Below, in pieces: positions 29,231 to 63,043 of a stretch of 64,000 nucleotides of DNA. Positions within the stretch are counted from its first letter, which is position 1. Each line of letters opens with the position of its first letter. The notes under the pieces were generated by a model. The model did not search any database. It was given only the letters and a program-made list of their open reading frames with translations, and had not been told where the DNA came from. The translations under genes and the position numbers were made by a program. Location: positions 54,994,001-55,058,000 of the forward strand of contig JBITNC010000001.1 of assembly GCA_050084985.1 (NCBI GenBank). The letters are read 5' to 3'. The stretch is from Nageia nagi (taxonomy: Eukaryota > Plantae > Pinophyta).

Positions 29231-29720
29231 GGAGTGGGCTATCCTCCTCCAAATTTAGCTGTAAATGCTCATAATTAATGGTATTTATTTTGGGCATTTA
29301 TGTGTGCTGCTTTACCACTTGATCATGCCACTTTAGCATTTAAACCTAGATATTTATGCATTGTTAGACACCCGTATGTTTCCCAATTATGCCGCTCCAT
29401 TGGGTTAATTAAAATTCATTTATAAAAGCTAAACATAGTTCGATTAACCTAACAATCCTAAATTTTAGGTTTTTATGTTTTCTTAACTTAATTTTGGGCA
29501 TTTATGTGAGGTTAATCAAAATTTGTTTATTTAAGTTTAATTGAACTTGGTTTATATAGATTAAATAGAGTTCGATTAACCTAATGTATTAATTGAAAAA
29601 GTAATATTTGTGGTCATGTATTGCATATGCTTGAAGGATTGTTGGGTTAATCAAACTCTATTTAACCCTTATAAATGAAGTTTGATTAACCCAATTTGAA
29701 CAATAAATATTTTTAACCAA
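29231..29720 (+). repeat. Left long terminal inverted repeat
   Basis: GGCTATCCTCCTCCAAATTTAGCTGTAAATGC..TTAATGGTATTTATTTTGGGCATTTAT is the reverse complement of the sequence ending at ~63037. Similarity continues in blocks for ~400-480 bp. Confidence 0.85.
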
Positions 29721-30239
29721 CCAGTCAACACAACACCCAATTAAATCAATTCAATCTTTGTTTAATCATAAGAATTTATCCTTTTGTATAATGAAATTTA
29801 AAATCTTCATCAACCAACCTATGTATACCCATTCAATTTGCTTCTTTGTTTTTAGATATCGACCTCTAAGCTTTTTTGTTGCAGAAGATCAACTCTCTCA
29901 GCTCCTCTAGGTACAATTTTTTCCCATAATGTATCTTGTCAAATAATTTTGTATGCCTTATATTTTTCCTCTATATTTTCATGCATCTCTTACTAGATTA
30001 ATTTTTGCATGCATGTTTTGGTAGATTCATCTTTAGATGCAGGTCTTGCTATATTAAGTTTTGCATGCATGTCTTACTAGATACATTTTTCAATGCATGC
30101 CTTTTTATTTAAAAATAAAAATAAAAAAGAAAAAATGTTAATATAGAGAGTACCCATCCTATTTATCAAGCTAAATGTAAGGTTTTTTGATAGAATTATG
30201 CAAATAAAAAAGTTTTAGGAATTCAATAAATCCTACCTT

Positions 30240-31085
30240 GAAAGAAATTATTATCCTTCCCATATTAATGTCAAGGTTCATCATACATTATCGGACTTCA
30301 TGGAATATTATCGAGTTTCATTGTTATTTGTTGGGATTCCTCATACATTTTTGGCCTTCATGGCATATTATTAGGCTTCCTCATTCATTTTCAGGCATCC
30401 TTTCTATACCAATGAATTTTATACCCTAAAATTAGTCCATTCCATGAATCTATATCTAGATCATGCATCTTGTTAAACATTTCCCTAGATATATGTATTC
30501 TTACACATTTTGCATATGCACATGATAATTGCATCTACTTAAAAGTCTCTAGAGCCTTTTGAGAAAATCTATTTTGTTAAAATCTTGAAAATAATTGCAT
30601 TCCATGATATCGTGTCTACATGATTCATTATTTTCATGCATTTTTGGCCTTAATGGACCATTACAAGTTTCAAGGTACAATGTCAAGCATCCTCTTCTCT
30701 TTTTGGGCATCATCTCCCATTATCGAGCTTCAAGGTACAATGTTGGGCTTCCTCTTTTATTGTTGAGAATCATCTCCTATTATCAGGCTTCATGGTATAA
30801 TGTCAAGCATCCTCTTATATTGTTAGACATCATCTCATATTGTCGGTCACCCTCATACATTGTCAATCATTCTCTTAAATTATCGTGCATTCTCTTCCAA
30901 TTTCAAGCATCATCTTCTATTATCAAGCTTCATGCCAGATTGTCGAGCTTCATCATGGGTTATCAAGATTCATACATGGATATCAAGGCATTCAATACCA
31001 TAACATCCATGCTAGAATAATGGTGTCTTTAGTTGTAGAGTTTGGCTTCATGTATCATAATTGCATCTACTTGATAGGGTATCTG
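30240..31085 (-). other. PLS-class PPR gene fragments interleaved with 20/60-bp tandem repeats
   Basis: Minus strand reads VDTISWNAII..FSQKALETFK*MQL (~30530-30625) and FK*MQL*YMKPNSTT (~31030-31075). Confidence 0.7.
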
Positions 31086-31324
31086 CATCACGCATCTTAT
31101 TAAACTTGAATGTGTTTAAAGTGTATTATTGATAAGTAAATATAAAATAAAGTACTCTTAAGGAAGGTAACATACAACCTAACATATGAAGAACTATGAA
31201 ATAATCTTATAATATAATAAATAATGACACAATTCATCTATACTGATAAAATGACTAATATAGTGATTATATGTTTATCTATGCTCTAAGCAATTTATGG
31301 ATTAAAATTGATGTGCTATTTGTA

Positions 31325-33400
31325 GTACATAAAGAAGTTGATACATAATGACATTGAAATGGTATAGGATATTTAATCTACCTATCCAAGATATCCTTGT
31401 AAAATAAATCTTTTGCATAAAGATTTAACCTGGAGATCAATACGATGCTTGAGAGGATTAACAAATTCAATGACAACAATATCTTTATGCAAGTTAGATG
31501 ATTTCAAAAAGGGTGAAGAATGTAATCCTGATGCATAGTACACTTTTTTGTGTGAGAAAAAAATACATCTGGTTAGAAAGGTAATTACAAGTCAAAGGAA
31601 ATTAGACATGACATGTATGTAACTATGTTTAATTCCAATTTGTGCATTGCATGATTATATTTTTCAAAGAAATACTATTCTAAACTTTCTATTTTTTATG
31701 TAGTTATTGGTGTACTTACGGTGATAAGGATAAGCGAGATGACCCTCCTCCTTCAATTCAAAAGAGGCACAATATTGAGAAAAGAGGTTTTCAATGTCAT
31801 TTTATTGTGAAGCTATACAAGAGTTTACTTAAAGTTGCATTTATAGTATACAATAAATTTGAACATGTTTCATTGGATGGCAAATCTTACCATGAAGTAT
31901 ATGATACAAGCAAAACAAGAAATGGAAGTGTTAATTTTGCTCCACGTGTGTTGAAAGAGACTTATTCCATGCTTGAGTCATTACTAATAGATGGTGTTTT
32001 TGTTGATGCAATTTGTAATGGGCAATTCTAAAATGAATATTTTGAAAATGTACCTACAGTATAAGACTTTTTCATTCTAAGGAAGGATGTTCAAAACATA
32101 TACAATAGATTGATTAGAGGAAAGGTACGAAAGGCTAAATATGATTCCATGAGTATTAATTATTGGTACCAATCCAATAAGGATAAGGTTTTCATATACA
32201 AGAACCCTAACCATGCCAAAAATAAATTCATTCTTGGTATTCAAACAAAATGGATATTGGAGAAGATGGTTGAATTATCCATAATAACATAATTTCAATG
32301 GATTCAACATTTAATACAAATTTTCATGGTGTAAGTATCTTAAAAATTTAATTTTTTAGCTACTTTTTATGTGCATTGCTAACTTTCTTATGTTTATTTT
32401 GATTCTAGTACCAATTTTACACATTACTTGTGTTTGATGCCCAAGAAAGTGGTCTACCAGATGCATGAGTTATCACATATAAAAATGGTGTTGATTACTT
32501 AGCTAAGTGACTACAAATATTGAAATAATGTTTTCTAGAACATCAACTAAATTGGAGTGTGAATGCATTTATGACTGATGATGTTGTTACATAAATTCAG
32601 GTCATCAAGTCTATGTATGTTGTTTATAATTATGCAAAATAAGTTGAAAGAATGTCATTTAATTTTTGATGACTCTTATTTTGTGTTTTTAATTTAAAAT
32701 ATTTTTTTTTATTACATCCATGTCAAGGAGAGTATTTGGTTGCAGGCATTTTTTGTGTTTATGGCATGTGAAACAATCTCAGTTAAATAATGCATACAAG
32801 AAGGTATCAATAAAAGATATTGAAAGAATTATGTTTTCAAGGTTAGATAAAATAACATAGAAATGTAAGGATGATGAGTATGTGAAAGTAGATATATCTA
32901 AGTTTTATATTAATTTCCATGAGGAGAAGTCTTATCTAAACTACTTATCTAAGAATTGGTTTTAGGGTGATAGAATTCATATGTTCACATATAACATGTT
33001 TATTCTTAATAATTTTTTAAATTGTTAAATATTTATCATATTGATTATAGTTTTTTTACTATAGGTATGTGGGCGAAATGCTACAAAAATATTCCACATT
33101 CCAACCAAGAAATAAATTCAGTTATAGAATCATATCATTATACTATGAAAACTAAGTTTTTATGTCATAATGCAAGAAAATATGCTAGAAGAATGGATAA
33201 ACTAGTTCAAAAGAATGGATAAACTAGTTCATGCTTTGTTGTTTTTGATTGAGTCATATTTTGTAAAGAGATGTAAATTGAAGATACTTGGTTTTTGGAA
33301 CAATTACAAGAAGGAGGAGTCTAGAAAGTTAATTATAGAGGTCTCACATGATACTTGATTATCATTATGTTCCTCATGAAGATGTAGTTGGTTAATAATG
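31325..33400 (+). pseudogene. MULE-family DDE transposase of the At4g13970/At1g60560 type; spliced and disrupted
   Basis: Motifs IFNLPIQD, YWCTYG, RGFQCHFIVK, FILGIQTKW, MDSTFNTN, YTLLVFD, FMTDD, FLCLWHVK and NSVIESYH. GT-AG introns at 31615-31703 and 32331-32408, and probably ~32610-32727 and ~32980-33065. Confidence 0.88.
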
Positions 33401-33989
33401 AAATGATATCTAATAACATAAAATTTAAGGTATTAAGAACCCATCTACAACATGAAATATAAAGGGTAAGAGTCTCATCACTCACCCATCAAGAAAGCCT
33501 TTGATCTCCCCAACCTGATCAAGATTGAATAAGCATAGGAGCCAAATTCATGGTTTTCCACTTGAACTCTTGGTAACTATGATTTTGAATCATACACTTA
33601 TTCAATATTAAATCAAAAAATGATAAAAATAATCAAAAATAAAACTTTTATAGAAGATTACAAACCCTAAAATATGCTTATAAATATAAGTTATAAATAT
33701 CCATAATATACAGGTTGTAATTATTATTTGATTAGTCTATTATAAACACATTTTGATTATGCAAGACTAACCATCATTCAATTATATAGGTTCAACAACA
33801 TTCAATTAACACTAATTAATAACTATCATGTGATAATGATGTGTAGGCTAAGTATCATTCGATTAACCTGATCATCGATGATGATCAATTTACCTTGGGT
33901 TTGCCAACTTGAACATGTATCTTGCATATCGAGGACATCATTAATGGCCTGGGCTAATTGAATTTTGATTAACCTTCATATTAAATAAA

Positions 33990-34470
33990 ATGAGAAGATG
34001 GTCATTCTCATTTGTATTATTCTATGCATGCTTGGATGTGGATATTGCAAGAAGCTCTTGGATTGGTAATGAAGCTCGACATAAGGTAGGTTTTACAGTT
34101 CTCACCCTTTGTTTGCTCATTTTGCAGTACATGAGTGTCTAGGAATGTCCTAAGGTTTATTTTGTGCATACGGGTTTTCGATCTTGCACTCCATGAAAAT
34201 TTTCTTTCTATAATTTATCAAAAAAATCCTTTTCAATGTATCCATTTTATGCATATCTTGCGACCATTATTTTCCATGAAACTATGTTTGCATCATGCAT
34301 TTCAAATCCTCATGCTTGGATTTTGTATCTCAATGGTTAGTTTTAAAACCCTAGAGCTTTGATTTGGTCTTGGTCATTAAACCCCTCAAGATTCATTTCT
34401 ATCATGGTTATTAAACCCTACTCGATCTATTATAAATGTATGTATAATGATTCATACCAAGAATAAAAAA
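33990..34470. repeat. Internal block repeated in direct orientation at ~50330-50845
   Basis: Both sites have TGAGAAGATGGTCATTCTCATTTG...TCTTGCACTCCAT...CATCATGCATTTCAAATCCTCATGCT...AATGTATGTATAATGATT. Confidence 0.8.
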
Positions 34471-37360
34471 CCTATGGGCCTTAACCCTAAATAGTCGATG
34501 AAAGCCCATTTCCATAATCATGCACTTGTAATGTTTATTGAATATTTACTGGCTAAAAAATATTCCTTGCAATCAAAACCACAGTATTTGATGAAGCCTT
34601 GTTGGTGAAAAAGCTTATTTTTTTTATTGCATGATTTAAAGACCATTAAATTATATTTTTACAATAGCCATTTTTACAATACCTGAGGAAATAATGGGCA
34701 AGTTCCATATCCTTAATTTCTATGTTTCCTTTAATTTATTATTGACTATATTTATTTCTTATGGAGAATCCCCTATGATGATCAAGTCATCAACATAAAG
34801 GTAATTACTAGTATATGACCATTCCTTACTTCATAGTAGAGTTTAGATTCTGATCTGCATATCATGAAGCTTGAATTAGTGAAAAAAGTATCCTTGGCAT
34901 ACCATGCTCTTATATCCTACTCCAAACCCTATATTGACTTCATAAACTTACATATGTAGGTAATTATAATGTGAATGGGATTGGAACTAACATCTTTAAC
35001 ACATGATATAGATCTCTACATGGAGCTAACACTTGTTGGATGAGAAAAATGTTAAGAACAAAGGATTTTCCATATGCATTATGCTTATTGTTGAAGTCTC
35101 TATCTTGGCTTTTGAGGGAGATTGTATCGATAAAGAGAAACACTTTTTTTGTGAAAGAATTGAAGGTATTTGAGGCTAAAGGAGAAAAGATGGAGAAGCA
35201 TAATAATGTAATTCTCCCATTAAGAGACTTCTATATCTTCTCTCTTATCTTGAAAAACCTTAAATTCTTTGACAAGAGAGTATTTATCCCTATCGATACA
35301 TTCTCCTTGAAAGCTAAGTCAAAATTTTTATGAATGAGTGCAATGGATATAGTAAATTCTACTCCTTTGGACTCAACCTTTTTTGCTTTCCCAAGAGTTG
35401 AGTTAGCTCCATGGAGAGCTTTGTATCTATCCCACTAAATTTCTTCAATACACCAACATCAATGAAGTGATCTGAATGCATATTATCGTAAGCATAAATG
35501 TAGTGATCTTGGTGCTCAAACATTCTAATTGTTGCTCAAATATATCCATGTATGTTTGAAACTATTTTATCTTGATTGCATAGATATCCACAAATGGGTA
35601 AGAATGATGAACATTCATGTTATAGAAAGAGATCATCAAAACATATAAATTCTAATGTTGATAAAGATTGTGATCATTATAGTATGAAAGATTTACAATG
35701 GTTCCTAAACACAAACTACAATTATGTGTGAATGCTATGAGGAGAAGAAGGAGCAGTTACATATCATTGAAGGTCAATTGATGTCAACAAAAGAGGAAAT
35801 TAAAATATTTATGAAAGAGAGAGACAGGTTTAGATACCAGCTTACAAACATCTTAATCAAGTTTAAAGAACTTAAATATGAATTACTTCTTCAGGATGAT
35901 GAAAGAACTAAAACTAAAATAGTAAGAAGTTAGATGGGGTGTAGAAGCTTTTTAGTATGATAGATTTATTTCAATTCTATGTGCTATACATTATAATTCT
36001 CTTTCTTAAATTACCTTGAAAATGTTATGTGATGTACAGTACTTACAAAAATATATTAGGCAAAGTGATTATTAAAGATTATGATTTTTTGATACATTTA
36101 TGAATATTTAGTATTCATTCGGATATTTGTATAAATATTGGAAACACATATTTTGGATACATCCATGTATCAATATATGTCTCTAAATATTGTGGATACA
36201 TTTTCTATATATCTTGACATATTTTAAAAACATGTATTTTTGATATATCCATGTATGAATGCATATCTCTGAATGTTGTGGATACATTAACTATATATAT
36301 GGAAACTCTCGATTATATTTTTGAAGGTTCAATACAAACTTGGAATTTTGTTTAAGTAATTTTCATTTATTATGCCTTTTAATATGTGTTATATGGATAA
36401 CTTTGATATTGTTTCTAAATTTCTATCAAAAAGTCTTTGGATGTAACTGAAAAAATGAATATATTGATGACATATATGTATTTATTCTTGGTACTTTTCT
36501 ACATTTTGAAGTTAGCAATTAATGTATAATATTGACAACTACATAAAAAATGAAGTGCACTTAAGCAAGGGAACATAATTATTATGGGTGTTGAATGTTA
36601 TATGAAATATTATATTGATGATAATTACATCTAATTGAAAGTGTCTAGAGCATTTTTGAAAAAATCCATTTTATGAAATCCTTAAGATCATTATATTACA
36701 TGATACTGTGTATACATGATAGGTTATTTTCAAGTATTTTCAACCTTAATAGACCATTTTTAGGCTTTAAGATATAATGTCAAGCATCCTCTTCTATTTT
36801 CAAGCATCATCTCCATTATTGAGCTTTAGGGTACAATGTCGAGAAACCTCTTCTATTATTGGGAATCATCTCCCATTGTTGGCTTTTAGGGTACAATTTT
36901 AGGCTTCCTCTTATATTATTAGGCATCATTTCCCATTATTGAGCTTCAACATACAATTTTAAATATCCTCTTCTATTATTGGGCATCATCCCCCATTGTC
37001 AACATTCAGGATACAATGTTAGGCTTCCTCTTCCATTATCGGGCTTCACAGTATAATATCAGACATCCTCTTCTATTATAGGGCATCATATCTTATTTTT
37101 AGGATTCAAGTACAATGTTAGGCTTCCTCTTCTATTTTCAGGCATCATCTCCCATTGTCAAGCTTTAGGGTACAATGTTGGGCTTCCTCTTCTAATATCA
37201 TGCATCATATCCCATTTTTAGGCTTCAGGGTAAAATGTAAGGCTTCATCTTTTATTGTTGGACATCATATCCCATTGTTGAGCTTCATGGTATAATGTTG
37301 GGCTTCTTCTTCTATTATAGGGCATCATCTCCCATTTTCGAGCTTCATTTAGGGTACAAT

Positions 37361-40300
37361 TATTAGGATCCCACATCCTAACATTTTAGTGTTAGTATTA
37401 ATATTTTATTAAATGGTTGACCTATATTGTAAACCATAATATTATGATTGTAAGGGCGGGGCATAATTTTGCATTACTATTAGGGTTAGGGTTAGTTTAA
37501 TATAAATAGAGGGAAATGTGTGGAGAAAGGCATCTTGAACATTATTTTTCACCCTTGGAGTTATGAGGAGGTAGCCCCCTCGAAGTGACCTGTGATTCTA
37601 TTACTATTCAATAAAATCCTATCCTTATCTTCTATTTGATGCTATTTTGTGTTCTATTTACCAGTTTATGCTTTGTTATTTTCTAATAGATAGTTGTCAT
37701 TTTCCTATTCAAGTTAATATTTGTTTCATTTCTATAATATTTCCCTTTTTTCATAATTGTAGCATTGTAACATCTGGTATCAAAGCTCTTTCCTAGCCCA
37801 TTCTATTGTAGGAAAATAAAAATAAAAATTTAGAGGTCTAGGCTAGAAACCCTCTATTGAAGGATCTATCATTTTTGGCTAAGCACACTTGCCCATAAAG
37901 CTATGTGTGAAGTGAGGTGCAAAAAACTCTACAGCAATACCCAGGCCTTAGATAGAACCCTAAATGGAATTGGACTCCATGTACTGAAAAGTATATCAAA
38001 GACTATCTAGGTTATAAATGAAAACTAGGTAGGAAGTTATTTTGACCATCTGTAAACTATAGTGCACCAGTAAGTGCCATTGGAAAGTTACTTATCACAA
38101 AAGTCATCTTCACAACCTCTTGTGAAAGTTGGATAGGAGGGGTGTTTAGACAAGCCTACAGAGCAAATAATCCTTACTTAGACTCATTCCTTCACATAAA
38201 AAACCTTGATTTGAGAAGGAGAATTTATGATAGGTAATTTTTTAGAGCTACCAAAAATAACAGTTTAGAGGTAACAAAAACTTTAGAGCAAAATAACTAA
38301 AAATATATTCATTTCAGTAGTTTTTAACAAGAGCAAATAGATCCATAGATGTAAAAAAAAGAGTTTGAAGGTTCAAAAATCATCATCAAGAGACCTAGCC
38401 CATTGTGATCATCTTTTTGAGCTGATTATTTTGATATATTACACCCATACACTTTTTTGGGCATTTCTAAAAATAGCAATTTCTAAAAATAGCAGTTTCC
38501 AAAAATATCAGCTTCAAAAATAGCAATTTTTAGAAATGGCATCTGAAACAAGATCCCAAATAGTAGCATAAGCTGATCCTACCATGATGACATTTCAAAC
38601 TATGATCCAACAAATGGAAAATACACTCACCAGTACATTTAGAGTAGAAATTTGATAAATATACACACAAATTAAACCCTTAATAATAAATGTGATAGTG
38701 TTCAACTAAGTCTCAGTCATACCAATAATGCATCCAATTCATAGCAATCAAGGTAGTCAGAAAATCCATAAGGGTATCATCATAACTTTCAAAGCCAACA
38801 AGGTGGGTTCATTCTTCCTTACACAACCAAATTAGATTTTCCTCTATTTGATGGAGATAATCCCAATGATTGGATTTACAAAGCTGGATAGTATTTCACA
38901 TTAAACCAAATCCTAGAGGATTTGAAGGTGTGCATGGCATATTTTCACTTGGATCATGAGGCTCTCCAATGGCACCAGTGGTACTCCAAAATGCATCCTG
39001 CTCCTTCATGGGATGAATTCACTCAGCAATTATTGATTCATTTTGGTCCTAGTGACTATGAAGACTTCACAGGGACATTAACCAAGTTACGTCAAACTAC
39101 AATAGTCAAGGAATACCAAAATCAATTTGAGAAATTTGTAAATCACACAAAGGGGTTGGATGATGCATTTTTCACAAGTTATTTTATCAGTGGCTTAAAG
39201 GAAGAGATTAAATCCAAGGTCAAAATGTTTAATCCCAAAAATATAATGGATGCTATTACCTTGGCAAAGCTCATTGAAGATAAAGCCAGTGCTCATCATT
39301 GAAATGCAAGACCTCCATTCACAAAAACACATAATATTACCCATTCCTCTAATAACATAAGGACCCCACCATCAAATCACATAATGCAAATTATAAAGTT
39401 GACATGGGAAGAAATGGAAGAGCATCGAAAGAAAGGACTGTGCTATAATTATGATAAGAAATCTATTCATGGTCATCATTGTACACAAAAAAAGTTATAT
39501 TTGCTTGATGCTAATGCTCCTAGTGAGGAGGAATATGAGAGTGCATCTGAAGAGGCTATAGAGGAAATTCTAGATGAGGAGGCCCCAGTTATCTCTTACA
39601 ATGCATTGGCATGAATTACCACCCCTCAAACTATGAAGGTTAAAGGGTTCTTTAAAAAGCATCCTCTCATAATATTGTTGGATTTTGGAAGTACTCATAA
39701 TTTCATTGATCCATGAGTGGCTAAGGTTGCTAACTGTTACATCCACCCTACAAATAATTTTGAGGTTATGGTTATTAATGGAGGAAAAATAGCATGTAAA
39801 GGCACATGTCATAATGTCAAACTAAGCATGGACCACTATACTTTGAAAAGTGACATGTACGTTGTACCATTTGGGGATGTGATATAGTTTTGGGGGTACA
39901 ATGGTTGAGGACTTTGGGCATCGTATAGTGGAATTTTGTATAGCTATGGATGACCTTCAAAATAGATAAACAAGAGCATACTCTTAGGGGATTATAGGGT
40001 GGATCTATACAACTTGTGAGCTCACATTGCACGGAAAAGATCCTACAAAAAATTGGAAAAGAGATGCTAGCATAGTTATACTCTTTATCAATATCTAAAT
40101 CTAAAATCACAGAGCTTAAGGATCTGTAGACCATCTTAAGTAAGCATTCAAGTACCTTTGAGGAACCATGGGTATTACCACCTAAGTGATCACATGATCA
40201 TGCTATCCAGTTGGTGCCAAGAAGTCACCCACCAAACATTCATCCTTATCAGTATCCTTGTTTCCAAAAAAATGAAATTGAAAAATTGGTTAAGGAACTA

Positions 40301-43300: not shown

Positions 43301-43368
43301 CTTATTCAAGTCAATATTCGTTTCATTTCTGCAATATTTCTATTTTTCATAATTGTAGCAATGTAACA
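37361..43368 (+). mobile_element. Full-length degenerate Ty3/Gypsy chromovirus (Reina-like), 6008 bp
   Basis: LTRs 37361-37772 and 42958-43368 (~90% identical by manual count). TSD ACAAT at 37356-37360 and 43369-43373. PBS TGGTATCAAAGC at 37775-37786. PPT at ~42945-42957. Confidence 0.95.
38536..42927 (+). pseudogene. gag-PR-RT-RH-INT-chromodomain polyprotein with many stops
   Basis: PKLDFPLFDG, LLDFGSTHNFI, FFDDILIYS, ESDACG, TDHHSL, ISMDFIEGLP and a terminal VLV*WQGMAPEDAT* chromodomain. Confidence 0.93.
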
Positions 43369-44299
43369 ACAATATTGGGCTTCCTCTTCTATTATCAAGC
43401 ATCATATTGCAGTGTGAAGCTTCATTCAAGGTACAATATCGGGCTTCCTCTTATATTATTGGGCATCATCTCCCATTGTCAATCATCCTCATACATTTTT
43501 GGCCATCCTCATAAATGATCATGCATCCTCTTCCATTTTCAATCATCCTATTATATTATCTAGCTTTGATGCATATTTGGATTATACATAATTTGATTAA
43601 TTGTTATAAATGATGTTCGATTGACCATGCCATAAAAATGTAATTCAATTAACCTATCATAAACATAATTTGATTATTCATGTTATCCATAGTTTGATTA
43701 ACCCCCTTTCATAAATGAACTTTGATTAACCTATTGTTTTTGTTACAAAAAAATTACATTTCTTACGGTAAGCAATCTTTTGTGCAAAATTTGCTCTTAC
43801 AGCAAGAAAATGCAAAATTTTCAATTTTTTTGGATAATACGCAGCTCATTTATAATTGTTGGTGTTAAAAACAAAATTGCATTTCTTATTGTAAATTTGC
43901 TCAAAAATATTTTACTATAAATTTACCATATGTCAACAAACATAGGCACAAACATCATAAGACATATATAACAACATAAGACCTATATGATATGTAAAAC
44001 ATAATATTGCATATATATTCAAATATTTCATGTGAAGAAGAGTAATGTAAAGATCCCACAATTTTTTTCACTCGTAGTATCATAAATGTCATACAATCTA
44101 ATCACTTACTGACCAAAATCATAATCTTTATATAACTAACTCTATTGAATCACATAATATATACAATATACATAGATAGATCCAATACACCAAAAGACAT
44201 ACATATAAATACATAAAAGTTTATTATACTATAAAGGTCTATTCTTCTTGTTTCTTTTAATATTAATATTATCTTTAAACCACTTCTCTCTTTCTTTTC

Positions 44300-45162: not shown

Positions 45163-45254
45163 CTGCATGGGACTATTAAAATATATCAATTATAGTCAAA
45201 CGTGGTAAGTAATTAAATCAATACATTAAAATTACTCTAAATTAAAATATATGA

Positions 45255-47819: not shown

Positions 47820-47824
47820 TATAT

Positions 47825-47873
<49 letters not shown>
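47820..47873. repeat. (TA)n microsatellite
   Basis: Directly visible, with one interruption. Confidence 0.97.
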
Positions 47874-47876
<3 letters not shown>

Positions 47877-49700: not shown

Positions 49701-52249
49701 CAAGTCAATTTTATCAACTAGTAAAGCTATTTAGGTATGTCATTAGTTTCTATTTAGGGTTTTTGTTAAGTTTTTTTCAAGCTTTTTGAATATCTTATTT
49801 TTATCATTTTTTGAAGCATCTATCATGTGGTTTTCAAGAAATATTCCAAAAAAGTAGGTTATAATCCAGTCATCTTGCACGTAGCACTTAAGTAGTGTAA
49901 GTTAACTAAAAGTATTCTTTCTAGGGGTTGTCACATTATTTGGGTAATCTACTACAATTGTAATCGAAGAAGACATTGGATTTTGTATTAAGTATTTATG
50001 CAATATGATGATGTTTGGTTATAATATTTCAAGGTCATTTTAACTTATTTCAACTTGGGTTGATATTGAAATAAGAACTTTTATAAACACATCTGTTAAT
50101 GCATTTACACACATCATGGATTTATACATAGGTCAATTAACCTGCCTCAATTTTGACCATTACCAATCACCGTAAACACATCTATTAATGTGAAGGTTAA
50201 TTGAACTTCTCTTATACTCTAAATGTAAGTTGATTAACACTAACCCTTATGGTTTAACACATGTGTGGGTTAATCAAAACTATGGCTATCCTTGTATACA
50301 CATAGTTTGATTATACCCTATAAATAATTGAGAAGATGGTCATTCTCATTTGCATTTTTTTGTGCATGCTCAGACATGGATGTTGCAGGGAGCTCTCAGA
50401 TAGGTAATGAATCTTGATACGAGGTAGGTTTTATAATTCCTAGTATTTTTTTTCAATGCATGATTATTCAAGAAAGTCCTTGGGTTTTTTTACGTATGGA
50501 TTTTTCATCTTGCACTCCATCAAAGTCAGCTTCAGTTTGCCAAAAAATTCTTGTGCCCTACTCTAGGCTTCCATAACATGCCATCATTGCATTTCATTAG
50601 TCTACTTTTTGATGAACCAATTCATAGAAATTTGACCTCCCCTTCCAATTTATCCATTCTATACATATCCTATGATCATTATTGTTTATAAAACTAAATA
50701 TACATCATGCATTTCAAATCCTCATGCTCAGATTCAATCTTTTGATAGTTAGTTTTAAAATCATTAAGCTTTGATTCTGTCTTAGTTGTAAGACCCTACT
50801 CACTTTATTAGAAATGTATGTATAATGATTTATGTCAAGAATAAGTTGATAATAGTCACTCATGCTATTAAATTATTTATGAAACTTATTTGGTGTGAAA
50901 TAGATTAGGATGAATTTCTAAGGAGATTATGCTTTGCTTTTATAGCACAACTATCATTTCATATGAATTTTGATAAGATAGATAGTTCATATGATTAAAA
51001 ATTGAACTTTTTTATAAGTTTGGTGATTTTTATTCAAAAGTTCTTATTTTAGCATTATCCAACCTTGTGAAATTTATATGCTTAATAGTTAAAAGTTTCA
51101 AAAGTTATTATTTCAACATTAATCAACTTATTTCAATATTTAGTTGGGTTACAATATTTTAAAAGTTGAGATGGGTTACATTAATTGAATGTGTTTACAG
51201 TGGTTGGAAATGGTCAAAATTGAGGTGGGTTAATCGACATATGTATAAACCCATGATGCTCAATAATGGTTAGTGAAGCTAGAAAATGTTTGAAGAAGCC
51301 ATGAATGCAATATCCTAAAATCTCTGTATTCCATAAATATGTTTGGATCATGCATATTGTTAAACAATTTATAGGCTTTATGAATTCTTACACATTTTGC
51401 ATAGATGGCTATCAAGGCATTCCAAACCATAACATTGAAACTTATGAACCTTGACTAACCATTGCCTACTTTATTATATCCTAATAGAATACAATTCTTA
51501 AACATTACCTCGTACAAATTGTTATTAATATGTTATTACAATATGGATATTGTATATTTTATGCATATTATTTTTATGTATTCTTAAAAATTGAGTGGGG
51601 CTTACCATAGTTTGATTTGATTGACTTCTAATAGTGAAGGAAATGATTGAATATAATAGTAAAGTAAATGATCGAATATAAAAGATTTACCTAATCACAA
51701 CAAGCTCACCAAAAAAATATCCAAATAATGAAATATTGTGGAACACCAACTATATAATATTCAATACAATAAATATATCCAAAGGAAACATCATTTTTAT
51801 TGATATTCAAATATGGATATTTACATATATCTATAGCAAACACCATACAATACAACTATTCTTGAAATAATCTCACAACCTTTTTTTCAAATAATGGAAC
51901 AAAGGTGTAGATATGATATCCTTAAATATCTATGAAAGACTTGGGAATCAACTCCAACATTTGGAAAAAACTATCAGGTTCTGATTAGTTGATGTATTCC
52001 TAAAAATAAGAAATACACTAGTATGAGAATATGAAAAATGGCAAAGAAAGAAATTGAAATGAAGGGAAATACACTTGTTAAAGATAAAAATAAAAAAAAC
52101 TATGTAACTTTGGATAGTGAAAATGGGGAATAAGGTATCATAAGAAAAATTAGAGGAAACAATAGTCACTCAATTTTTTCCTAACTCTTTTTTCCTTTTC
52201 TATGCTATTTCATGAGCCACTAGAGATAAGTTTTTGTATTCTTGAATAT

Positions 52250-55200
52250 CAAATGTAAAGCCTTAAGGTATCATTGAAGGAGAATAATAAAATTTATTTC
52301 CTCATCATGAATCATCTTGATTTTTCTAGTACCCTAAGTTGAGTAAAATTTGCCCCAACTTGAAGCAAATAGTGGTATTTCTCCATATCTTCACATGAAG
52401 TTTCAAGAAACGGATTTAGTAAATGGGTAAGTAGCTTTTTAAGTATTTCCTTTGTGATTTTTCCTTCCCATTTGATATTTTCATCTTTCCATACTTTCTT
52501 TTCTCTATCAAATATTGTCATAAGGCTCAATCTTGTTGATTTTGGTGCTAAAAGTTTCATTAGTATTTGGAATGTTCTGATCATATAAATATTCATAATT
52601 ATCTCTAACAAATTTAACAATCACATTGATGGATGACTGTACATGAATAAACATCATATTCCTCTTCCATCTTGACATTAGATTCTTCTATCATTTGCAC
52701 TCTATTAGTATATTCAACCAAAGTGTCAATCATAATGTTTTCCTTTTGTAACAAATATTATACTATCTCTTTTCTAAAATATCTTGAAAATATCTGAGTT
52801 TTAGAAGTATAAGGCACACAATCCCCTTGGCTTACTTTCCCAAGAATATCTTTAAAGATATAAGTACTTTAGACCTTTGTTTTCAGAATGAGTTCCCAAT
52901 TTACTCACCAAAGTAGGATCATCCTTAGGACCCTTTACTGTTGGATCCTTCATAAACCCTACCTCATCTCATTCAACATTAGGTTCACCCTAGATCTTGT
53001 AAGCAATTGGATATTCTTCATCATCAACAAGATATGTTTCTTCTCTTGGCTCTTTACCTATTTCTACTGATAGATAGCCTTCATCATGTTGTTCTAAAAT
53101 GATAATTTTCCCAACCATCCTAGGATATACTTCTTATTTTTCATCAACCATAATTTTTCCTTTTCCCTTAACTATGGGTTTAGTTTGTTGAATACTAGAA
53201 CTTATTTCAACTTGTATATTTAAATGGATACTTGGTGGAGGAGTGTTATAGAAAAATGAACTGCTACTATGGAAAGAGGTTAGAGTTCAATCATATGATG
53301 TTCATACTCCACCTCTTTACTAATATGATGATTTGGCTTTGGTTATTATATTGCATGGTATAAGATGAATCATCATCTTGTGCCTCTTTTAAGCTTGTTC
53401 CAAATCAACAATTGATAACATAATTTCATAACCTAGAAGTGTTATTGGATTTTCCAATCGGATTTCTCTAGCCATTCTTGCATCCATCTCATAAAATATA
53501 TCATTTATCATATAGGACATGGGAGGATTTTTTTTTTTTTTAGTCAAGACTCGATCACAATCCTCCAATATTGATAAGGCTTCTTTATAAATATTATTCT
53601 CTTTAAAAAGTGTTAACTCTTTGGGAAATGGTTCACAATTAGGCAACTTTTTAGATAAGATATCATTTGCTTCATATGCCTTGATCTCCTCCATTTGTTT
53701 CTTAACCTTCTCTATTATTTGTTGTACTAGTTTATTATATTGAATTACCATAATGTTAAGTTGAGTATTATTTGTTAAATACAACATAGTATCATGGTGA
53801 ATTGAATAATCAATAGTAGGGATTCTTGGATGTATAGGATCCATTGTGCCTTCCTTGATGTTTCTCAATTCTTCTAGCATTCCCCCAACTATAGCTATCA
53901 TAGAGAATGGTATTTTAAAGCCTTGGTATGTCTAAATTGGCTATAAAGGTAAATAATCTTTTAATGCATTAATAAATTTATCCTTAAATTCATTAGGATC
54001 ATGTTTAACCTTCACTTTACTATCACTTCTCTCCAATGTGTAACAAAAAGGATATTGGGATCATAACCTCTCCACTTGACCTCTTTAAAACCATATTATT
54101 GCATAAATGTAATGGCATTTAGAAAAGATGCATGACTTCGGTATTTTTGATGATTGATTTCATATGGATTAAGCTTATAAAACCAATATTTACTATGATC
54201 ATATGAAACCTTAGTTTTGATATCTTCACAAGTCTACCTAACTGCTTCACCAAATAAGAGTGAATGGGGACATAATTTAGGTAAGAACTTGGGTTGCAAT
54301 TTACCTCCATACATTAAATATTCCATCTTTCATGATGACAACATCACTTACTTTTTGCTTCTTCTATGAATTTCAAGAATTTATGAGAAATTCTAGGAAT
54401 TATTTGGGTAATTCTATCATAAAATTTGATGAGGATAGTTTCACAAAAAGCTTTGTATGTTCCATAATCCTCCCTAACTTCTTACAACTTATCTTAAATC
54501 CAATATCCATTTGATGAAAACCCCATTCAAGAATCAAGTCCCATTTATCCCAATAAAAAGAAGATAAGGATTGAATACCATGTAAACTTCATGGGCTTCC
54601 TCTCAAACAAATCCACATATAGTTGAATCAATTCATTATGCTTCCTATCACAAATATATGTTGACCAATCAAATCTTAGTAGGAGTTATCATGGATTTGC
54701 AAATTAAATTAAATACCACCTTGGATACACTGTTATGATATGAAATACCCAAAACATAACTAATATTCTCAACATATAATTGGGCCCACCTTTTCATGGA
54801 ATACAAACTCAATGGAAATCCTAGCTGAGCCATCCACATTTTAGAGTCTTTAAATATATTCATTTATCTGATATCATTCAAGCATATAATGGCATATTGT
54901 ATAAGTTTTGTTACATAAATAGTTGTGATTACATTTTTTTTCCTAAAAACCCTTCTAAAATCCTCCACTCTAAAGGGAAACACCTTTCTGCCATTAATAT
55001 AAAAAAAGCCCTTCTCTTAGGTTTATAAGAATGAGACAACCATGTTATTATATCATTGGAAAAATTAACCTTAGGGAGTACCAATTTACCAATATTTGAT
55101 TTAGCCCTATTGCAAATAGGTTATTATTTTTTTATCATAATTGACCTTTATAGCATTGTAAAGTTTTAACATCATTCCATGACTATACTTAGAAGTTTCT

Positions 55201-55330: not shown

Positions 55331-55994
55331 TTTTGGTTTCTTCCCTTTTTCATGTTCTAATCAATATTCAAAATGAAATTTTGAAGTACACACAACTATT
55401 CGTTAATGATGATATCTATCTTCTTATTTCTAGGAAGCCATTACATCTGATACAAAATACAATATAAATTTTATTTTAAATCCCTATGGTAAAAAATGAA
55501 TGGTATGTTGTAAATATGTTATTTGGTTTCGTTAAAAAAATATAGATAAACTAAATAATAATTACATATTCTATGAATTGCAAACCTTAAATAGAAAACC
55601 ATAATTATGCATATTCTATGAATACAAACCATAAATAGAAAACCCTAACTCTAGTTATTATATTAAATTCAAATACTAAATAGAAAACCTACCTCAGAAT
55701 CCTTAGCAAATTTTGTTGTATTTGACTCATCTGAATGATCCCTAAATTATTCAATGACACTTGAATTACTTCAACGATGATCAACTTACTTTAGAAATGA
55801 TTGAATTCTTTAGTGATACCTACCTTGAGTTAGGTGCCATCAAATTAACTCATTGATCACTTCCTTCCTTTAGAGATGATTGTATTTCCTTTGAGATGCC
55901 AAACTAACTTCTTGAATGCTTAACTTGCTTCAAGGATGGCTAACTTGGTCTTAGATTTCTCAGTGGAAATTTGTAAAACTTGGTTATGCTAAGA

Positions 55995-57544
55995 AAATAA
56001 TAATCTTTTGTGGCTTTATAGTTTAATGTTTGGATGCATTAAATGCGATAACACTTAGCATCAATATGTGCAAATTGTGTCATTAAAGTCATTGATCCTT
56101 TGAATATAGACTTGAGTTGATTTACTTTTTGCCTTTAATTAATTAAATATTTATAATATTAGTGATACCTTCATCACTTTTAAAGCTCTTTAATGAAGTT
56201 GAATATCTTTTAAACTACCCAATTATGTTTAATGAAGCCTAATAATATGTCATGAAGCCTAAAGATGCATGATGAAGCATGATAATATGCCATGAAGGAT
56301 GATAATACTAAAGCTCAACAATCTTTCTTAAATCTTTACAATATGCCATGAAGCTCAAGGATGCATGAGGAAGCCCAAAAATCTACTATGAATCCTGATA
56401 ATGCATGATGAAGCTCAACAATATGCCATGAAGATCGATAATGTATGATGAAGATTGATAATCTACCATGAAGCTAGACACTATGCCATGAATCCCGATA
56501 ATGCATAAGGAAGCTCAACAATCTGCTATGAATCTCAATAATGCATTATGAAGCTTGATAATATGCCATGAAGCTTGATAATATACAAGGATGTTCGATA
56601 ATGTATGAGGATGCCGACAAGGTTCCTTGAAGACTGATAATGAATGCAAAAATGAATCTAGCAAGCATGTATGCACAAAAAAATGGGAAAATGTTCAACC
56701 AAGATGGATGATTTAGATATAGATTCATGTAAAGGTTGTAGAGAAACTTAAGCATGTATAATTATCATATGTAAAGCCAAACTCTACAACCATTTTCACT
56801 ACTCTTCTAGCATACAAATGATGTTGTGGTTTTGAATGCCTTGATAGCCACATATGCCAAATATATAAGAATTCATAAATCCTGAGGAAATGTTCAACCA
56901 AGATACATGATTCAATCATAGATTCATGGAATACAATGATTGTAGGATATGTAATTCATGACTACATAAAGGATTACACTAAAAATCTTTGGTATACATG
57001 ATGTAGACATAATATCATGGAAATGCAATGATCTTGAGAATATGCACAAAATAATTTTTCTAGATAAATATAAGTATGTAAAATTGTTAGATGCGAAGCC
57101 AAACTCTACAATCTTTGCCACTACTCTTCCAGCATTCAATCAATGTTATTATTTTGAATGCCCTAAAAATGTTCAATAAAATGCATGATGCAAACACAAA
57201 TTCATGGAATGTAAAGATTTTAGGATATGCAATTCATGGATTCCTCACACATTATCAAGCTTCCTCATGCATTATTGGGCTTCATGGTAGATTATCGAGC
57301 TTGATCATGCATTATTGGGCTTGCTTATGCATTTTCAATTATGCATGAAAGAGAGTTAAAAGTGGTGAAGGTATCAATAATGTTATAAAGGTTTAATTAA
57401 TTAAAGGCAAAAAGTAAATGAAGTTGACTCTTTAATCAAAGGATTAGTGACTTTAATAACATAATCTACACATATGGATGCTAAGTGATTCAACATTTAA
57501 TGGGTGTAAAGCTTTAACTTTAAACACACAAAAGATTATTATTT
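55995..57544. repeat. Fold-back structure: ~190-bp inverted arms enclosing 20-bp repeats and PPR fragments
   Basis: 55995-56190 is the reverse complement of 57350-57544 (TTTACTTTTTGCCTTTAATTAATTAAA vs TTTAATTAATTAAAGGCAAAAAGTAAA). The loop contains VKPNSTT-type and SWN motifs. Confidence 0.8.
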
Positions 57545-58635
57545 GGATTCAATAGCAGGTAACTATGCAAGAAAAAAAGATACATAAAGCCTAGGAAATA
57601 TTTAACAAGATGCATGATTAAGACATAGTTTCATGGAATGCAATGATTATAGGATATGCAATTTATGGCTTCATATTTTGACCATTGCACATACTAGAAT
57701 AATGCTGACAAGTGTTATAGAGTTTGGATTCACATCTAACAATTACATCTTTTTGAAACTCTATATACCATATCCATAAAATTGTGTCTACATCATGCAT
57801 AATGGCATCCTTTATAAAGCCATTAATTGCATTATTGGTACCCATAAAACCCTATATTGTAATGATTTATTTCCTTACAAATATTATATCAAAGAGTTTA
57901 AAGTATCATAATGATTGATTTCCATACATATCATTGCATTCAACATTATTGAATTTTTTTGATGTATTTTCTTTATGTATCTTGTAATCATTGCATGCTA
58001 GGAAATTACTAATGTTCAAATAAATGCAACCATAAAATTACAATAATGTTCATCACAAGTGCATCCAATATTCATAACAAAATTTAATAATGTTTACATG
58101 TCATTGTATTGCAAGTGTCCAACAAAGACATATACATGCAAAAAAATAGCATACACAATATTTACAAGATATATCAAATTACAAGTCTTGGAATCAATGT
58201 ATCATAAATAAAAATATTCAACAAACTACAAGCAACACTTCCATTTCCACCATATGAAACTATTGTAGAAGTATCCTCATTGGGTTATTCTCTTTTCCAT
58301 AGCCCCTTTTGCAATCAATGTACAAGATCCTATTTCCATTGTACAACCAAGTGAAACATTGGACTTATACCAAACTATTCTTTTTGTTTAATTGATTTTG
58401 ATAGCTGGAGGAGTTATCCCCAAGATAGGTATATATCTAGATCTAAGCCCTTCTTCATTCGTAGTGATCCTTTCTTATTCTTTGCTTTGTTTAGTATGTA
58501 ATTGCCTTGAATTGTATAAGTCTTATAACAACATTATTATGAAGAATACAATTCATATTGAAGAATATGAGTCATAAAAATCATTTACATGAACAACAAG
58601 ATTCATAATTGATCAAGAGTAAGATAAAGACCTAC

Positions 58636-59532
58636 CTATTTTCTATATCCTCACATGCTGTGAGAGAGAATTCAATGACCAAATGCTAAGTTAGTTGGAG
58701 GTCATTTATTATTCTAGCTTTCTATTCAATCAACCAATCCTACACACATTTCTTAGTTAGAAACATACTGAAGTATAATTTGCAACACTCCTTACCTCTA
58801 CATATTAGTTTATAGGGATTCTCAACATTTTGTCTTTTCCTTGTCCAACACTTCCATTTCTTGGTTAAATTTAAATATAATTGGTTTTTTGCAATCCTCA
58901 TGCTGGATATAACCAAGGGTATCAATAATATAACACACATTTTCTTTAACAACCATATTGAAGAAATGGTTAGCCCATGCAACTATGTAAATCCTTGGTG
59001 TATTTGATACTTCATCCCATATTTTTACAAATGTATTTTCCTCTTATATTTTGAATTTTACCAAGTTTCCCTTTGGATTAAGTACACCATGTTTGGATAT
59101 TGTAAATTCTACAGTTAGAGGAGTTATTGTATGATTTAAAACCAAGTCCAAATCAAATTGTCCATCTAGAATTTTTTTACTCAAAGATGGAATCAATTTC
59201 ATCATGTTCCATTCTTGTTTAATAAATTGGCCAAATTATTTTAGATTAGACAACAAAGTATGATTTGCATCCAACCAATTAGTGATGAGTACATAACAAA
59301 TTGAACAAGCACCTTCCTCATCAACACTATCACTTAGCTGGTCTATCAATGCACAAAATACATTTGTTAGAAGTCACTTTATCATATCTATACTGGTAAA
59401 TTCATGTTGATACCATCTGACCATACCAACTCCATGGTGATCACCATAATATTCCCCTATAGGTTTTTGTGCTCCCTCAGTATGCATGGGATAGATTGGA
59501 GGTTGGAATATGACAACATCACCCTCATTATC
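58636..59532 (-). pseudogene. Copy 2 of the At3g11760-like C-terminal domain, as one exon
   Basis: RWYQHEFTSID..TNVFCALIDQLSDSVDEEGACSICYVLITNWL..DGQFDLDLVL..PLTV..KIWDEV..YIVAWANHFFNMVVKENVCYYIDTLG..FKFN../ICRGKECCKLY..LVIEFSLT. A few stops and one frameshift. Acceptor at 59533-59534. Confidence 0.82.
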
Positions 59533-59769
59533 CTATTTTTATGCATATAACCTATTAGATTATATGAAATATTCTATGTAATGGACTATATTGTCTACTT
59601 ATAGATGAATAAGAATATATGTAATATAATATAAGATGAATTAAAGTTGAATATTCTAAGTAAATTTCATTTCTCACAATTTGAAAAGGATTATATCCTT
59701 TTAAAGTAAAAAAATATATTTACAAATTCATAATTTTATTATCTAACTACTACAAAATAAGATGCTCAC

Positions 59770-60420
59770 CTGCTCCTTTAACATTTTTACTTCTGATCCA
59801 TTTTCCTCATGCAATGTCCTTTATGTACCTTATTGTGACCATTTGGTTGTGTCTAGAACATATTGTTATGGGAACCATCCTCCTTGGTGACCATTTAGAC
59901 ATCCCTATTTGACCCTTCCATCCTTTGGCTACATAGGGGAACCTAATAAGTATTCAACATACAATACTAGGACCATCTTGGTTATCAATTTAGATTATTT
60001 GATTTTGACACATACAAATTAAATGGTTGAGAACCATTGATTTTAGCCCTTTGCAGTTCATATCACCTAGTATTTTACACCTAAAAGTTAACAAGCATTT
60101 TGCAATAAATTAGTCTCCCATATCATAAAACCCCCAACTACTTCTCCCATTGTAGTAGCATCTCCATCAGGTATGGGTAGCTCCTAATCATCCAACTCAA
60201 ATATCATCACTTGTATCAAAACATGTCCCTTTTTGATCATTTTGCCATGAAACTTATTAGTAGGATCATCATTGTGCACACTCCCATAACCCACTATTTG
60301 GCTATTAAGATGGAGAAGATGCACCTTTTGTCCCTTTTTAATGTCCTTTGTGTCAACCTCAAATAACCTTGTCCCTTTATTAATTGTTTTTATATGATTC
60401 AATCTTTATATTTTTTTCTT
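59770..60420 (-). pseudogene. Upstream exon with a Tnp1/En-Spm-type (DUF8039-like) beta domain
   Basis: VHLLHLNSQIVGYGSVHNDDPTNKFHGKMIKKGHVLIQV..ELPIPDGDATTMGEVVGGFMIW. The donor CAG|GTGAGC at 59770/59769 is phase-compatible with the 59532 exon if read as phase 0. Confidence 0.65.
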
Positions 60421-61189
60421 TCCTCTAGCTCATAATCTTCAAGGTCTTTTAAGATGTCATTATTTGCTATTTATAGAAAATTTTCATGTCTACAGACATT
60501 GTTCTACCAATACTATTCTTCCAATCAATCTATAACATTTACTATTATATTATGACTTAAGCACCTTATTTATATATTTTCTTTCAGCTAATATTTTTTA
60601 GATTGTACCTGGATGGCTTATAAATGCCATCAATTGGCCTCCTACCTCTTGGTAGATGAGGAACTAGTGGAGCACCTTTATGAAATAAACTCTTATGCTC
60701 ATTTAACCTTTGAATATCAACCTCTCATTTTGCATTGAAAAATGCACAATCACAAGAAAGTAAAATTATTATATCCTATTATGCTTCCTAATTGCTTCCC
60801 ATTCTCTTGAAACACCATCTATGTAAACCTCTTTATAGTCATGTACCCATTGCAACACTCTATATTCATCAACGATAAGTTGTAAGTGGTCTTGTACATT
60901 ATCCTGTAATGAACATTGCAAGTATCACTATTTTTATCAAGAGTTACAACAATACATTCAACATATATACATTTAGTGCACCCATAAAATAATAGAAAAT
61001 TAGATGTGTAGTATCTGGTACATACCATCCTTAGTTGAGATTTTTCAATAAAACACTTCAAACAACTAAGACCAATAGAGTCCCAATTAGTATCTAATAT
61101 TTATTTTAAGGTAGTTTATGATTCATGGAATTTGTATGGAATGCAATGATTGGAGGATATTAAATTCATGGCTAAAGTAAGGACATCTA

Positions 61190-61985
61190 AGAATGCATAA
61201 GGAATCCTAACATTTATTATGGAAGCTCAAAAATGTATGAGGATGCCCAACAATATACCATGAAGCTCGAAAAATATACCATGAATCCCTACAATGTACC
61301 ATGAAGCCTTATATTGTACCATGAAGCTTGATAATATTTCATGAAGGTTGACATTATAAGATGAGTCCTGATAATCATAAGTAAAGGCCTATAATCTCTT
61401 TCAAGGAATTAATGGAATGCATACAATATACATGAAATCCTTTGATTTGCATAATGCAAATACAATATCATGAAATTCAATGACCTTGAGGATATGCAAA
61501 AAATAAGTTTTATAAAAAGCATCTATACACTTTTAAGAAGATACAATTGTAAGATCCAAATCCAAACTCTGCAACCTTTTCCATCATTATTCCAGCATGT
61601 GCCATCATGGGAGCTCTATAAGAAGTTATGGACATTTGTCAAAGAGATGTTGTGAATGGTTTTGTATCATATGTTATCATTATGAATGCCCTAATAGGCA
61701 TGCATGAAAAATGAGGGAGAATACATAAAACCCAAGAATTATTTAATAATATGACTGATGCATACACATTCTGATGGAATGCAATGATGGGAGGATATGC
61801 ATGTTATGATGTAAACAAGTTTCATGGATTGTAATGTTCACATGATATGCCTTAAATGGATATGTTGAAAGGTTTGTGAATTATTTGACAAAATGCCTCA
61901 TTGAGATATAATCTCATGGACTATAATGATCCCAAGATATGCACTAAATGGGTTTTCTAAAAAGGCTATATAAACTTTTAAGATA
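61190..61985 (+). other. 20-bp repeat array followed by a decayed multi-motif PLS-PPR fragment
   Basis: PNSATFSIIIPACAIMGAL*EVMDICQ..NALIGMHEK*GRIHKTQELFNNM..WNAMMGGYA..ELFDKMPH*DIISWTIMIPRYALNGFSKKA. Confidence 0.85.
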
Positions 61986-62559
61986 TGAATAATGAGGATG
62001 CCCAAAAAGGATGCATTTAAAAATCAAACTCACTACAAGGGTTTTTTCAAGATTAAGAATAATTAAAATAATGAGGATAAATGAAAATGTTGTGGTTCTA
62101 AATGCAAATACATCAAGGATACCTTAAAAAATTAAGAAAATATGTCTAAACTACAAGCAAGGATGCCCTTCATAAATATACTCGCTATAAGGGTTTTAAG
62201 AATATAAAGAACAAATAAAACTATAGCGACATCAATGAATGTAAATATTGTGATAAACTAACACCACAATGATGCTTGAACTACAAAGCAAGGATATCCT
62301 TGAAAAATATACTCAATACAAATAAGGGGTTTTTGAACATGAAGAAAGAAATAAAACAACATTTTTTACAAGCAACAAGGGTTTTTTGAATATGAATAAG
62401 GAAATAAAATAACAATTTTTACAAGAAATGAGGGTTTTTTTTCCACATACCAAGGGGTGTTTACTGCATGTTAGGGTCCTTGTACTGGTCGAGAGATCCT
62501 CATATTGGAAAAGTCAAAGGGAAATAATTAATCAATCAAGTTTTGTAGTGATGGGGGTT

Positions 62560-63043
62560 TCTTTGATTAACTTGTGTTAATATGATTATTATAAAGGATA
62601 AATAATAATTATTAAATAAAAATTCAATCTACCAATTAAATTGGATGCAATGTTAGTTGGTTGGTAAACATTTATGAGGGTTAATTGAACTTCATTTATG
62701 CAAGTTAAACAAATTTTGGTTAACTCAAAAATATTGCATGTATGATAAATGCCCAAGATTTAAAAAAAAACATAAACACCCAAAGTTAAGGATTGTTGGG
62801 TTAATTGAACTCTATTTAGATTTTATAAATGAATTTTGATTAAATCTATGGAGCAACATAATTAGGAGATGCTGAAAATGCATAAATACCCAGGTTTAAA
62901 TATTTCATAAATGCTTAGGTTTAAATTAGAGGAGTGGGACAATCAAATAATGAAGTGGAGGAGCAAAGGCTATAAATGTCCAAAATAAATACCATTAAAT
63001 CTATGCATTTATAACCAAATTTGAAGGAAGAATAGCCTATCGC
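62560..63043 (-). repeat. Right long terminal inverted repeat
   Basis: ATAAATGTCCAAAATAAATACCATTAAATCTATGCATTTATAACCAAATTTGAAGGAAGAATAGCC ending at 63037 pairs with 29237 onward. Confidence 0.85.

Follow-up and report, generated by a model that had tools for sequence, protein, structure and literature searches.

The 64,000-nucleotide stretch of Nageia nagi DNA analyzed here (hereafter the window; contig JBITNC010000001.1, positions 54,994,001 to 55,058,000) contains, at 29231–63043, an interval that is bounded by two inverted repeats and holds a transposase-like sequence near its left end and a second gene near its right end. This arrangement raises the question of whether the interval is one transposable element and, if so, whether that element was inserted at anything like its present length. 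A first-pass annotation had answered both parts in the affirmative, proposing a single ancient element of ~28 kb, after subtraction of a nested Gypsy retrotransposon, with a large interior carried as cargo. We consider 29231–63043 to be a single, old and inactive coding Mutator-like element (MULE), a DNA transposon of an abundant gymnosperm family, and assign this reading a probability of roughly two in three. The proposal of one ancient element is accordingly favored, while its native size of ~28 kb is unsupported, given the nested Gypsy and the other units in the interior; the 34 kb now present probably arose mostly by secondary growth after insertion and are not the native length.

The inverted repeats, which lie 33.8 kb apart, are real. 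Positions 29237–29703 align with 63037–62563 in inverted orientation at 66% identity over 497 nt including gaps, and ungapped blocks within this alignment reach 84% (29381–29484 / 62764–62867), 75% (29242–29326 / 62947–63031) and 74%. MAFFT alignment of the terminal inverted repeat (TIR) cores gave 75–77% identity over 264–441 aligned columns, a Kimura two-parameter distance (K2P) of ~0.28–0.30. The terminal core measures ~480–580 bp, with ~75% identity between the sides, and 29231–29813 / 63043–62563 is the sole inverted pair of this kind in the 64-kb window. An additional 170-bp terminal core was found nowhere else in the window, and the six internal candidate sites scored at the level of shuffled sequence.

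The position of the termini was fixed by a left arm from an independent copy. When metagenome contigs were scanned with an 18-mer from the TIR, 120 loci were recovered, only one of which, L062 (contig Ga0068628_1000223), was related; a 27-mer pattern had no match in these contigs. L062 aligns with 29237–30741 at 82% over 1517 bp. In a three-way alignment of L062 with both window arms, the likeness begins at GGARYRGGCTATCC, which corresponds to 29231 in the left arm and 63043 in the right; beyond it the L062 flank is unrelated, so that the family terminus is fixed at exactly the two coordinates that the first-pass annotation had chosen. That the L062 left arm ends at this motif within a different flanking sequence is also evidence of mobility. 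That flank carries a Copia-type Pol_BBD remnant (L062:4874–5164, E 1e-4), as expected for plant DNA.

Only two public runs, both of low coverage, were found to contain part of the stretch, and no RNA run was found. Copy number was gauged from their contigs, which were aligned to 28200–34100 at ≥80% likeness (~9,300 and ~10,500 contigs placed). Summed contig depth was 5–19 in the flank, 53–77 in the bin that contains 29231, 176–530 over the TIR and 1,000–4,000 over the transposase, and it reached ~15,000 over the PPR (pentatricopeptide repeat) unit at 30367–30563. The family is thus abundant, and the repeat boundary defined by depth agrees with 29231. By the depth in both runs, the transposase region is ~10 times commoner than the TIR type present here, and the spike over the PPR unit fits several units per element, probably together with cross-matches to PPR genes. 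The left flank itself (28327–29220) is a low-copy repeat in both runs, represented by contigs of ~85–88% likeness; one X2 contig, from one of the runs, stops at 29220, ten bases short of the terminus, and the same junction could exist in that organism. A joint from 29664 to 33988 was considered as a deletion derivative and set aside as ambiguous, since it rests on 32 letters of a hairpin motif that also precedes 33988.

Behind the terminal cores, mirror symmetry extends ~1.9 kb inward from each terminus. Comparison of the first 2.17 kb of the left side with that of the right side gave 29 high-scoring segment pairs (HSPs), nearly all of them mirrored, versus 2 in 13 equal-sized control segments, in agreement with the earlier observation that the same 20/60-bp repeats and PPR fragments occur on both sides in mirrored orientation. 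The inward order is the same in both arms: a hairpin-bearing core, an unshared stretch, PPR-derived units of ~140 bp, and tandem arrays of 20/60 bp. The left subterminal arm is collinear with L062 up to 30741, and because the TIR core, the 28-bp repeats, the PPR unit and the arrays are contiguous and collinear in L062, the PPR repeats and arrays belong to the MULE arm. On this sequence comparison, the PPR-derived repeats are built-in parts of the arm, neither cargo specific to this copy nor a nested foreign element. Units of ~140 bp are located at 30367–30563, 51301–51435, 56821–56975, 57144–57287, 57536–57672, 61130–61173 and 61664–61802; with the exception of 51301–51435, those in the left half of the element read on the plus strand, those in the right half on the minus strand. 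Translated on the minus strand, 51263–51454 matches PPR_2 (E 1.3e-6) and PPR (E 4e-5), slightly under the Pfam gathering scores.

A plus-strand DDE transposase near the left end, as proposed in the first-pass annotation, was recovered. Residues 28–497 of P0006, a 620-aa protein of Cryptomeria japonica, align to 31422–33207 (tblastn, E 2.5e-49), a second Cryptomeria protein, P0009, matches the same region (E 5e-46), and the match is extended to 31389 by P0031 and to 33219 by P0038. The sequence is a pseudogene, with 12 in-frame stops in the aligned stretches and a frameshift at 32280, and the gaps in its alignment probably correspond to short introns; both this gene and the second gene were searched piece by piece with their exons left unjoined. 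A 115-aa open piece (31684–32028) had 38 relatives among 1.84 billion representatives. The full-length relatives P0006 and P0009 contain a MULE transposase domain and a ZSWIM1-3 RNaseH-like domain, with P0009 matching PF10551 (MULE) at 43 bits, above the cut-off, as well as PF21056. No second copy of the transposase was detected by tblastn in the 64-kb window.

Inside the right end, the minus-strand gene that had been described as spliced (here gene B) was found as minus-strand open pieces at 58825–60924. Its putative last exon, 58825–59532, is a single frame with 3 in-frame stops, and one more stop lies in 60091–60405. No piece of gene B matched a Pfam family at E≤1, be it Peptidase_C48, the TNP1 family or any other, and a "Tnp1/DUF8039-like" label considered for 60187–60405 was unsupported in both Pfam and the protein atlas. 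Among neighbors in a protein language model, a streptophyte cluster scored 0.94, and Herpes_teg_N and Josephin scored <0.9, a hint that the C-terminal domain may be a papain-like protease, which we treat as a lead only. A paralogous fragment of this domain, on the minus strand at 44458–44981, aligns to 58825–59043 at 36% identity (E 2e-14). The paralogue, which contains a 117-aa piece at 44458–44808 (minus strand), has a close relative elsewhere, the 82%-identical P0045, and because the fragment has this close relative of its own, it derives from another lineage. The AlphaFold model of the 117-aa piece (pLDDT 57) was too poor to test the papain-like fold.

Taken in order, the left arm, the transposase on the plus strand, gene B on the minus strand and the right arm form the layout of a Mutator-type element, each gene lying just inside an arm, as the first-pass annotation had recognized from the long TIRs, the transposase inside one end and the convergent second gene inside the other. 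The traits of the Mutator superfamily that are present comprise the MULE-type transposase (as a pseudogene), TIRs longer than 100 bp and several copies with a common terminus. Gymnosperms (Cryptomeria japonica and Taxus chinensis) supply the closest protein relatives. Repeats specific to the family are nearly confined to 29231–63043 within the window: GATTAACC occurs 11 times versus 2.7 expected, always at 29442–51235, and the 20-bp unit is found only in kb 30–61. All coding parts of the element are dead, with multiple stops in both the transposase and gene B, and GC content and CpG observed/expected ratio (o/e), which are 0.33 and 0.24 in the whole window, are 0.31 and 0.12 inside the element.

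The transposase and gene B are separated by ~25 kb, and here the claim of cargo finds no support, the interior including two further inverted-repeat units, expanded tandem repeats, displaced arrays of the arm type and the paralogue from another lineage, while the PPR fragments are parts of the arms. The one proven nested insertion is a Ty3/Gypsy retrotransposon flanked by a perfect 5-bp duplication, ACAAT (37356–37360 / 43369–43373), with domains of Retrotrans_gag, Ty3_capsid and RT_RNaseH (E 3.7e-20), weak RVT_1 and rve, and the reverse transcriptase (RT) upstream of the integrase; paired long terminal repeats (LTRs), a 5-bp duplication, gag and RT ahead of integrase together are what defines Ty3/Gypsy. 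It is younger than the divergence of the TIRs, its LTRs differing by a K2P of 0.107 versus 0.28–0.30. In the unit at 55995–57544, the inverted ends share an ungapped 201-nt core at 82% and are 75.5% identical over 322 aligned columns. Across 126 open pieces from the interior, Pfam recovered PPR alone, so that no recognizable cargo gene is present; in a scan of ~170 open pieces, the interior yielded only PPR and the domains of the Gypsy retrotransposon, with no second transposase, C48, TNP1 or TNP2. The longest open frame in the element, of 180 codons (53392–53931), lies in 30%-GC DNA, in which stop codons are common, and is of a length expected ~0.05 times by chance in the whole window, by a rough estimate, and had no relatives in a word search and no match in the PDB. 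A weak hint of NDUFB10 for this frame was ruled out by the lack of relatives and of any match to solved complex I subunits.

Whether the two ends arrived together is the point on which the interpretation turns. A single element is the more parsimonious explanation because the interval has one left-type and one right-type terminus, both facing outward, with no terminal core between them, and from this we infer that the two ends most likely stem from a common insertion event. Several observations nevertheless weigh against it. The candidate target-site duplication (TSD) matches at 6 of 9 positions, the same count that the first-pass annotation had given, in pure A/T sequence; against this fixed pair of ends, random pairs drawn from the window reach ≥6/9 with P ~0.022, so that the TSD lends weak support, and moving the boundary by one base changes the match to 8/11. 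The L062 left arm is nearer to the left arm of the window (82%) than is the right arm of the window, the TIRs being only ~75% alike, and because of this the similarity of the TIRs is silent on whether the ends share a history. Arm-type arrays and hairpin fragments at 36560–43736, 51251–51454 and 55995–57544 have positions and orientations that simple nesting does not explain, and the Gypsy is the sole nested piece with a verified target duplication. Much of this would be accounted for if the ends came from two or more separate, truncated members of the family, one supplying the 5′ side and the transposase and another the 3′ side and gene B, lying 34 kb apart in a local cluster of nested, rearranged copies that was never mobile as a unit. 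The high copy number of the family, the extra arrays and hairpin fragments, the distant gene B paralogue that necessarily came from another element, the 6/9 TSD and a likeness between the left and right arms that does not exceed their likeness to L062 are all compatible with this explanation. It requires, however, that two independent truncations removed exactly complementary inner ends and left the outward termini. No further terminal core is found in the interval or in the rest of the window, and the genes have exactly the order and orientation of one complete two-gene element. We therefore regard it as unlikely.

The opposite extreme, a native giant MULE of ~28 kb at insertion that carried ~19 kb of cargo in addition to its two genes, would explain why family-type repeats are spread over the whole interior yet nearly absent beyond it, and why a target duplication could be proven for the Gypsy alone among the interior pieces. 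The interior nonetheless resembles a set of distinct inverted-repeat units and expanded tandem repeats, with a fragment that came from another lineage, PPR is the one Pfam family in its 126 open pieces, and reported Pack-MULEs are at most ~7 kb long, the efficiency of DNA transposition dropping with size (PMC6431247); an origin of this kind is distinctly improbable. Still more remote, in our judgment, is the possibility that the PPR-derived arrays and gene B constitute a CACTA-type element that overlaps a short MULE or is nested in it. A CACTACAA motif does occur on the minus strand at 62543–62550, just inside the right TIR core, but the four matches to it versus 2 expected are not significant, the left side has no corresponding CACTA terminus (paired termini were sought and none were found), no Pfam scan of pieces of the window detected a TNP2-type transposase or another CACTA family, and the L062 arm runs without a break from the TIR core through the 28-bp repeats and the PPR unit to the arrays, collinear with the left arm of the window. 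A single MULE whose non-Gypsy interior is probably also of secondary origin is thus the reading that we prefer, and the locus is on this basis a fairly ordinary, though well-preserved, case. The features on which it rests are collected in Table 1.

Table 1. Coordinates of the features assigned to the element at 29231–63043 and of the sequences nested in it (positions are those of the window)
Feature	Position	Strand	Description
Candidate left TSD	29222–29230		AATAAAAAA; 6/9 vs 63044–63052
Left TIR core	29231–29813	+	Begins GGAGTGGGCTATCC; three ~50–75-bp hairpin units (GGTTAATC...GATTAACC)
28/56-bp tandem repeat	29976–30103	+	Tandem Repeats Finder (TRF); also present in L062
Left subterminal arm	30213–31110	+	~140-bp PPR-derived unit 30412–30516; 20/60-bp arrays 30261–30987; PPR-like fragment 31002–31100
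MULE-type DDE transposase pseudogene	31389–33219	+	tblastn with P0006, P0009, P0031, P0038
Segment X	33737–34580	+	Hairpin motif ahead; direct repeat of 50078–50900, ~73–78% identity
Internal arm-type 60-bp array, left part	36560–37360	+	Split by the Gypsy insertion
Nested Ty3/Gypsy LTR retrotransposon	37361–43368	+	LTRs ~410 bp, 90% identity, K2P 0.107
Array continuation and TIR-like fragment	43369–43736	+	Array to ~43570, then hairpin-type TIR-like fragment 43531–43736; lacks the terminal 170-bp core
Paralogue fragment of gene B C-terminal domain	44458–44981	-	36% identity, E 2e-14 to 58825–59043
~357-bp tandem repeat, three units	45245–46278	+	
1.15-kb unit	50112–51258		~80-bp inverted ends (85–88%); encloses the other copy of segment X; no clear target duplication
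PPR-derived unit	51251–51454	+ (PPR motif on minus strand)	DNA matches to six other units
180-codon open frame	53392–53931	-	Longest in element; 30%-GC DNA; no relatives
1.55-kb unit	55995–57544		~300-bp inverted ends; encloses 20-bp arrays and PPR-like fragments
Gene B, broken	58825–60924	-	C-terminal domain 58825–59532; upstream pieces 60091–60405, 60587–60724, 60772–60924
Right subterminal arm	61100–62140	-	20-bp arrays 61136–61376 and PPR-derived units; mirrors 30213–31110
Right TIR core	62563–63043	-	Reverse complement begins GCGATAGGCTATTC
Candidate right TSD	63044–63052		TATATAAAT; 6/9 vs 29222–29230

By analogy with Mutator elements, the intact transposase of such a MULE would have bound the arms, excised the element and reinserted it with a 9-bp target duplication, and gene B may have served as an accessory gene, like MURB in MuDR or the ULP-like genes of KI-MULEs. 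After insertion, the element decayed, acquiring stops in both genes and losing CpG to an o/e of 0.12, and it was probably enlarged between its two genes by the 6-kb Ty3/Gypsy, by small inverted-repeat units, by the expansion of tandem repeats and by one or more fragments from a related element.

MuDR of maize, among the closest parallels, is 4.9 kb long and has TIRs of ~215 bp. The present element resembles it in having a DDE transposase of the Mutator superfamily, long TIRs, possibly a 9-bp duplication, and a pair of genes that read inward. It differs in its ~1.9-kb arms with PPR-derived repeats and in its distant transposase, the MULE domain of which was recognized via gymnosperm relatives; gene B has no detectable Pfam relation and is likened to the second gene of MuDR by layout. 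In KI-MULEs (Kaonashi) and other MULEs with a ULP gene, from Arabidopsis, melon, rice and grapevine, a cysteine protease gene runs opposite to the transposase gene (PMC2528002). Gene B is likewise opposite to the transposase, and its C-terminal domain is, on the language-model evidence, a candidate papain-like protease; however, KI-MULEs lack TIRs, whereas the present element has long ones, and ULP1 (Peptidase_C48) gave no match at E≤1 on the open pieces of gene B or its paralogue.

Coding MULEs of maize and rice are commonly enlarged or disrupted by nested LTR retrotransposons, with a decayed reading frame (PMC3903597), and the present element resembles these in being a transposase-bearing MULE enlarged by an LTR retrotransposon and other insertions, although its host is a gymnosperm, its decay is much deeper (K2P ~0.3, CpG o/e 0.12) and its final size is larger. 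Pack-MULEs, with reported sizes below ~7 kb (PMC6431247), and MULEs whose TIRs are multiple or tandem provide precedents for fragments of host genes within the ends, here PPR, and for internal TIR-like pieces (PMC3310237, PMC6431247). In contrast to Pack-MULEs, which are non-autonomous and mostly 1–2 kb long, this element encodes its own, now dead, transposase, and its PPR pieces, amplified into arrays, form part of each arm of a coding element, an arrangement conserved in the L062 copy. We found no paper in the literature on gymnosperm MULEs with PPR-built arms.

Other repeats occupy the remainder of the window. A remnant of a LINE-type non-LTR retrotransposon is found on the minus strand at 5800–10800, with RVT_1 at 7515–7919 (E 3e-14) and DUF4283 at 10243–10524 (E 4e-7), and an assembly gap of 100 N is located at 15756–15855. 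Tandem repeats consist of 311-bp units with 99.7% identity (17749–18374), ~270-bp units with 85–91% identity (18363–19455) and, just upstream of the left flank of the element, two units of ~817 bp with 88% identity (26471–28105).

The family is of greater value than the locus, which as a coding MULE swollen by nested insertions is an ordinary outcome of decay in a large gymnosperm genome: it combines a convergent second gene with long, PPR-built arms whose structure independent copies share. It is quite unlikely, in our estimation, that the family is a so far undescribed lineage of two-gene MULEs in gymnosperms in which PPR-built 1.9-kb arms are functional, the accessory protease is papain-like rather than of the ULP1 type, paralleling the ULP genes of KI-MULEs, and the copy moved as a unit of at least 28 kb; if this were true, the element would be among the largest cut-and-paste MULEs known. 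The termini, arm structure and gene order described here could seed a family model for annotation. Both the PPR-built arms and the convergent second gene can be traced genome-wide, and doing so may reveal how elements of this kind recruit fragments of host genes and accessory proteins.

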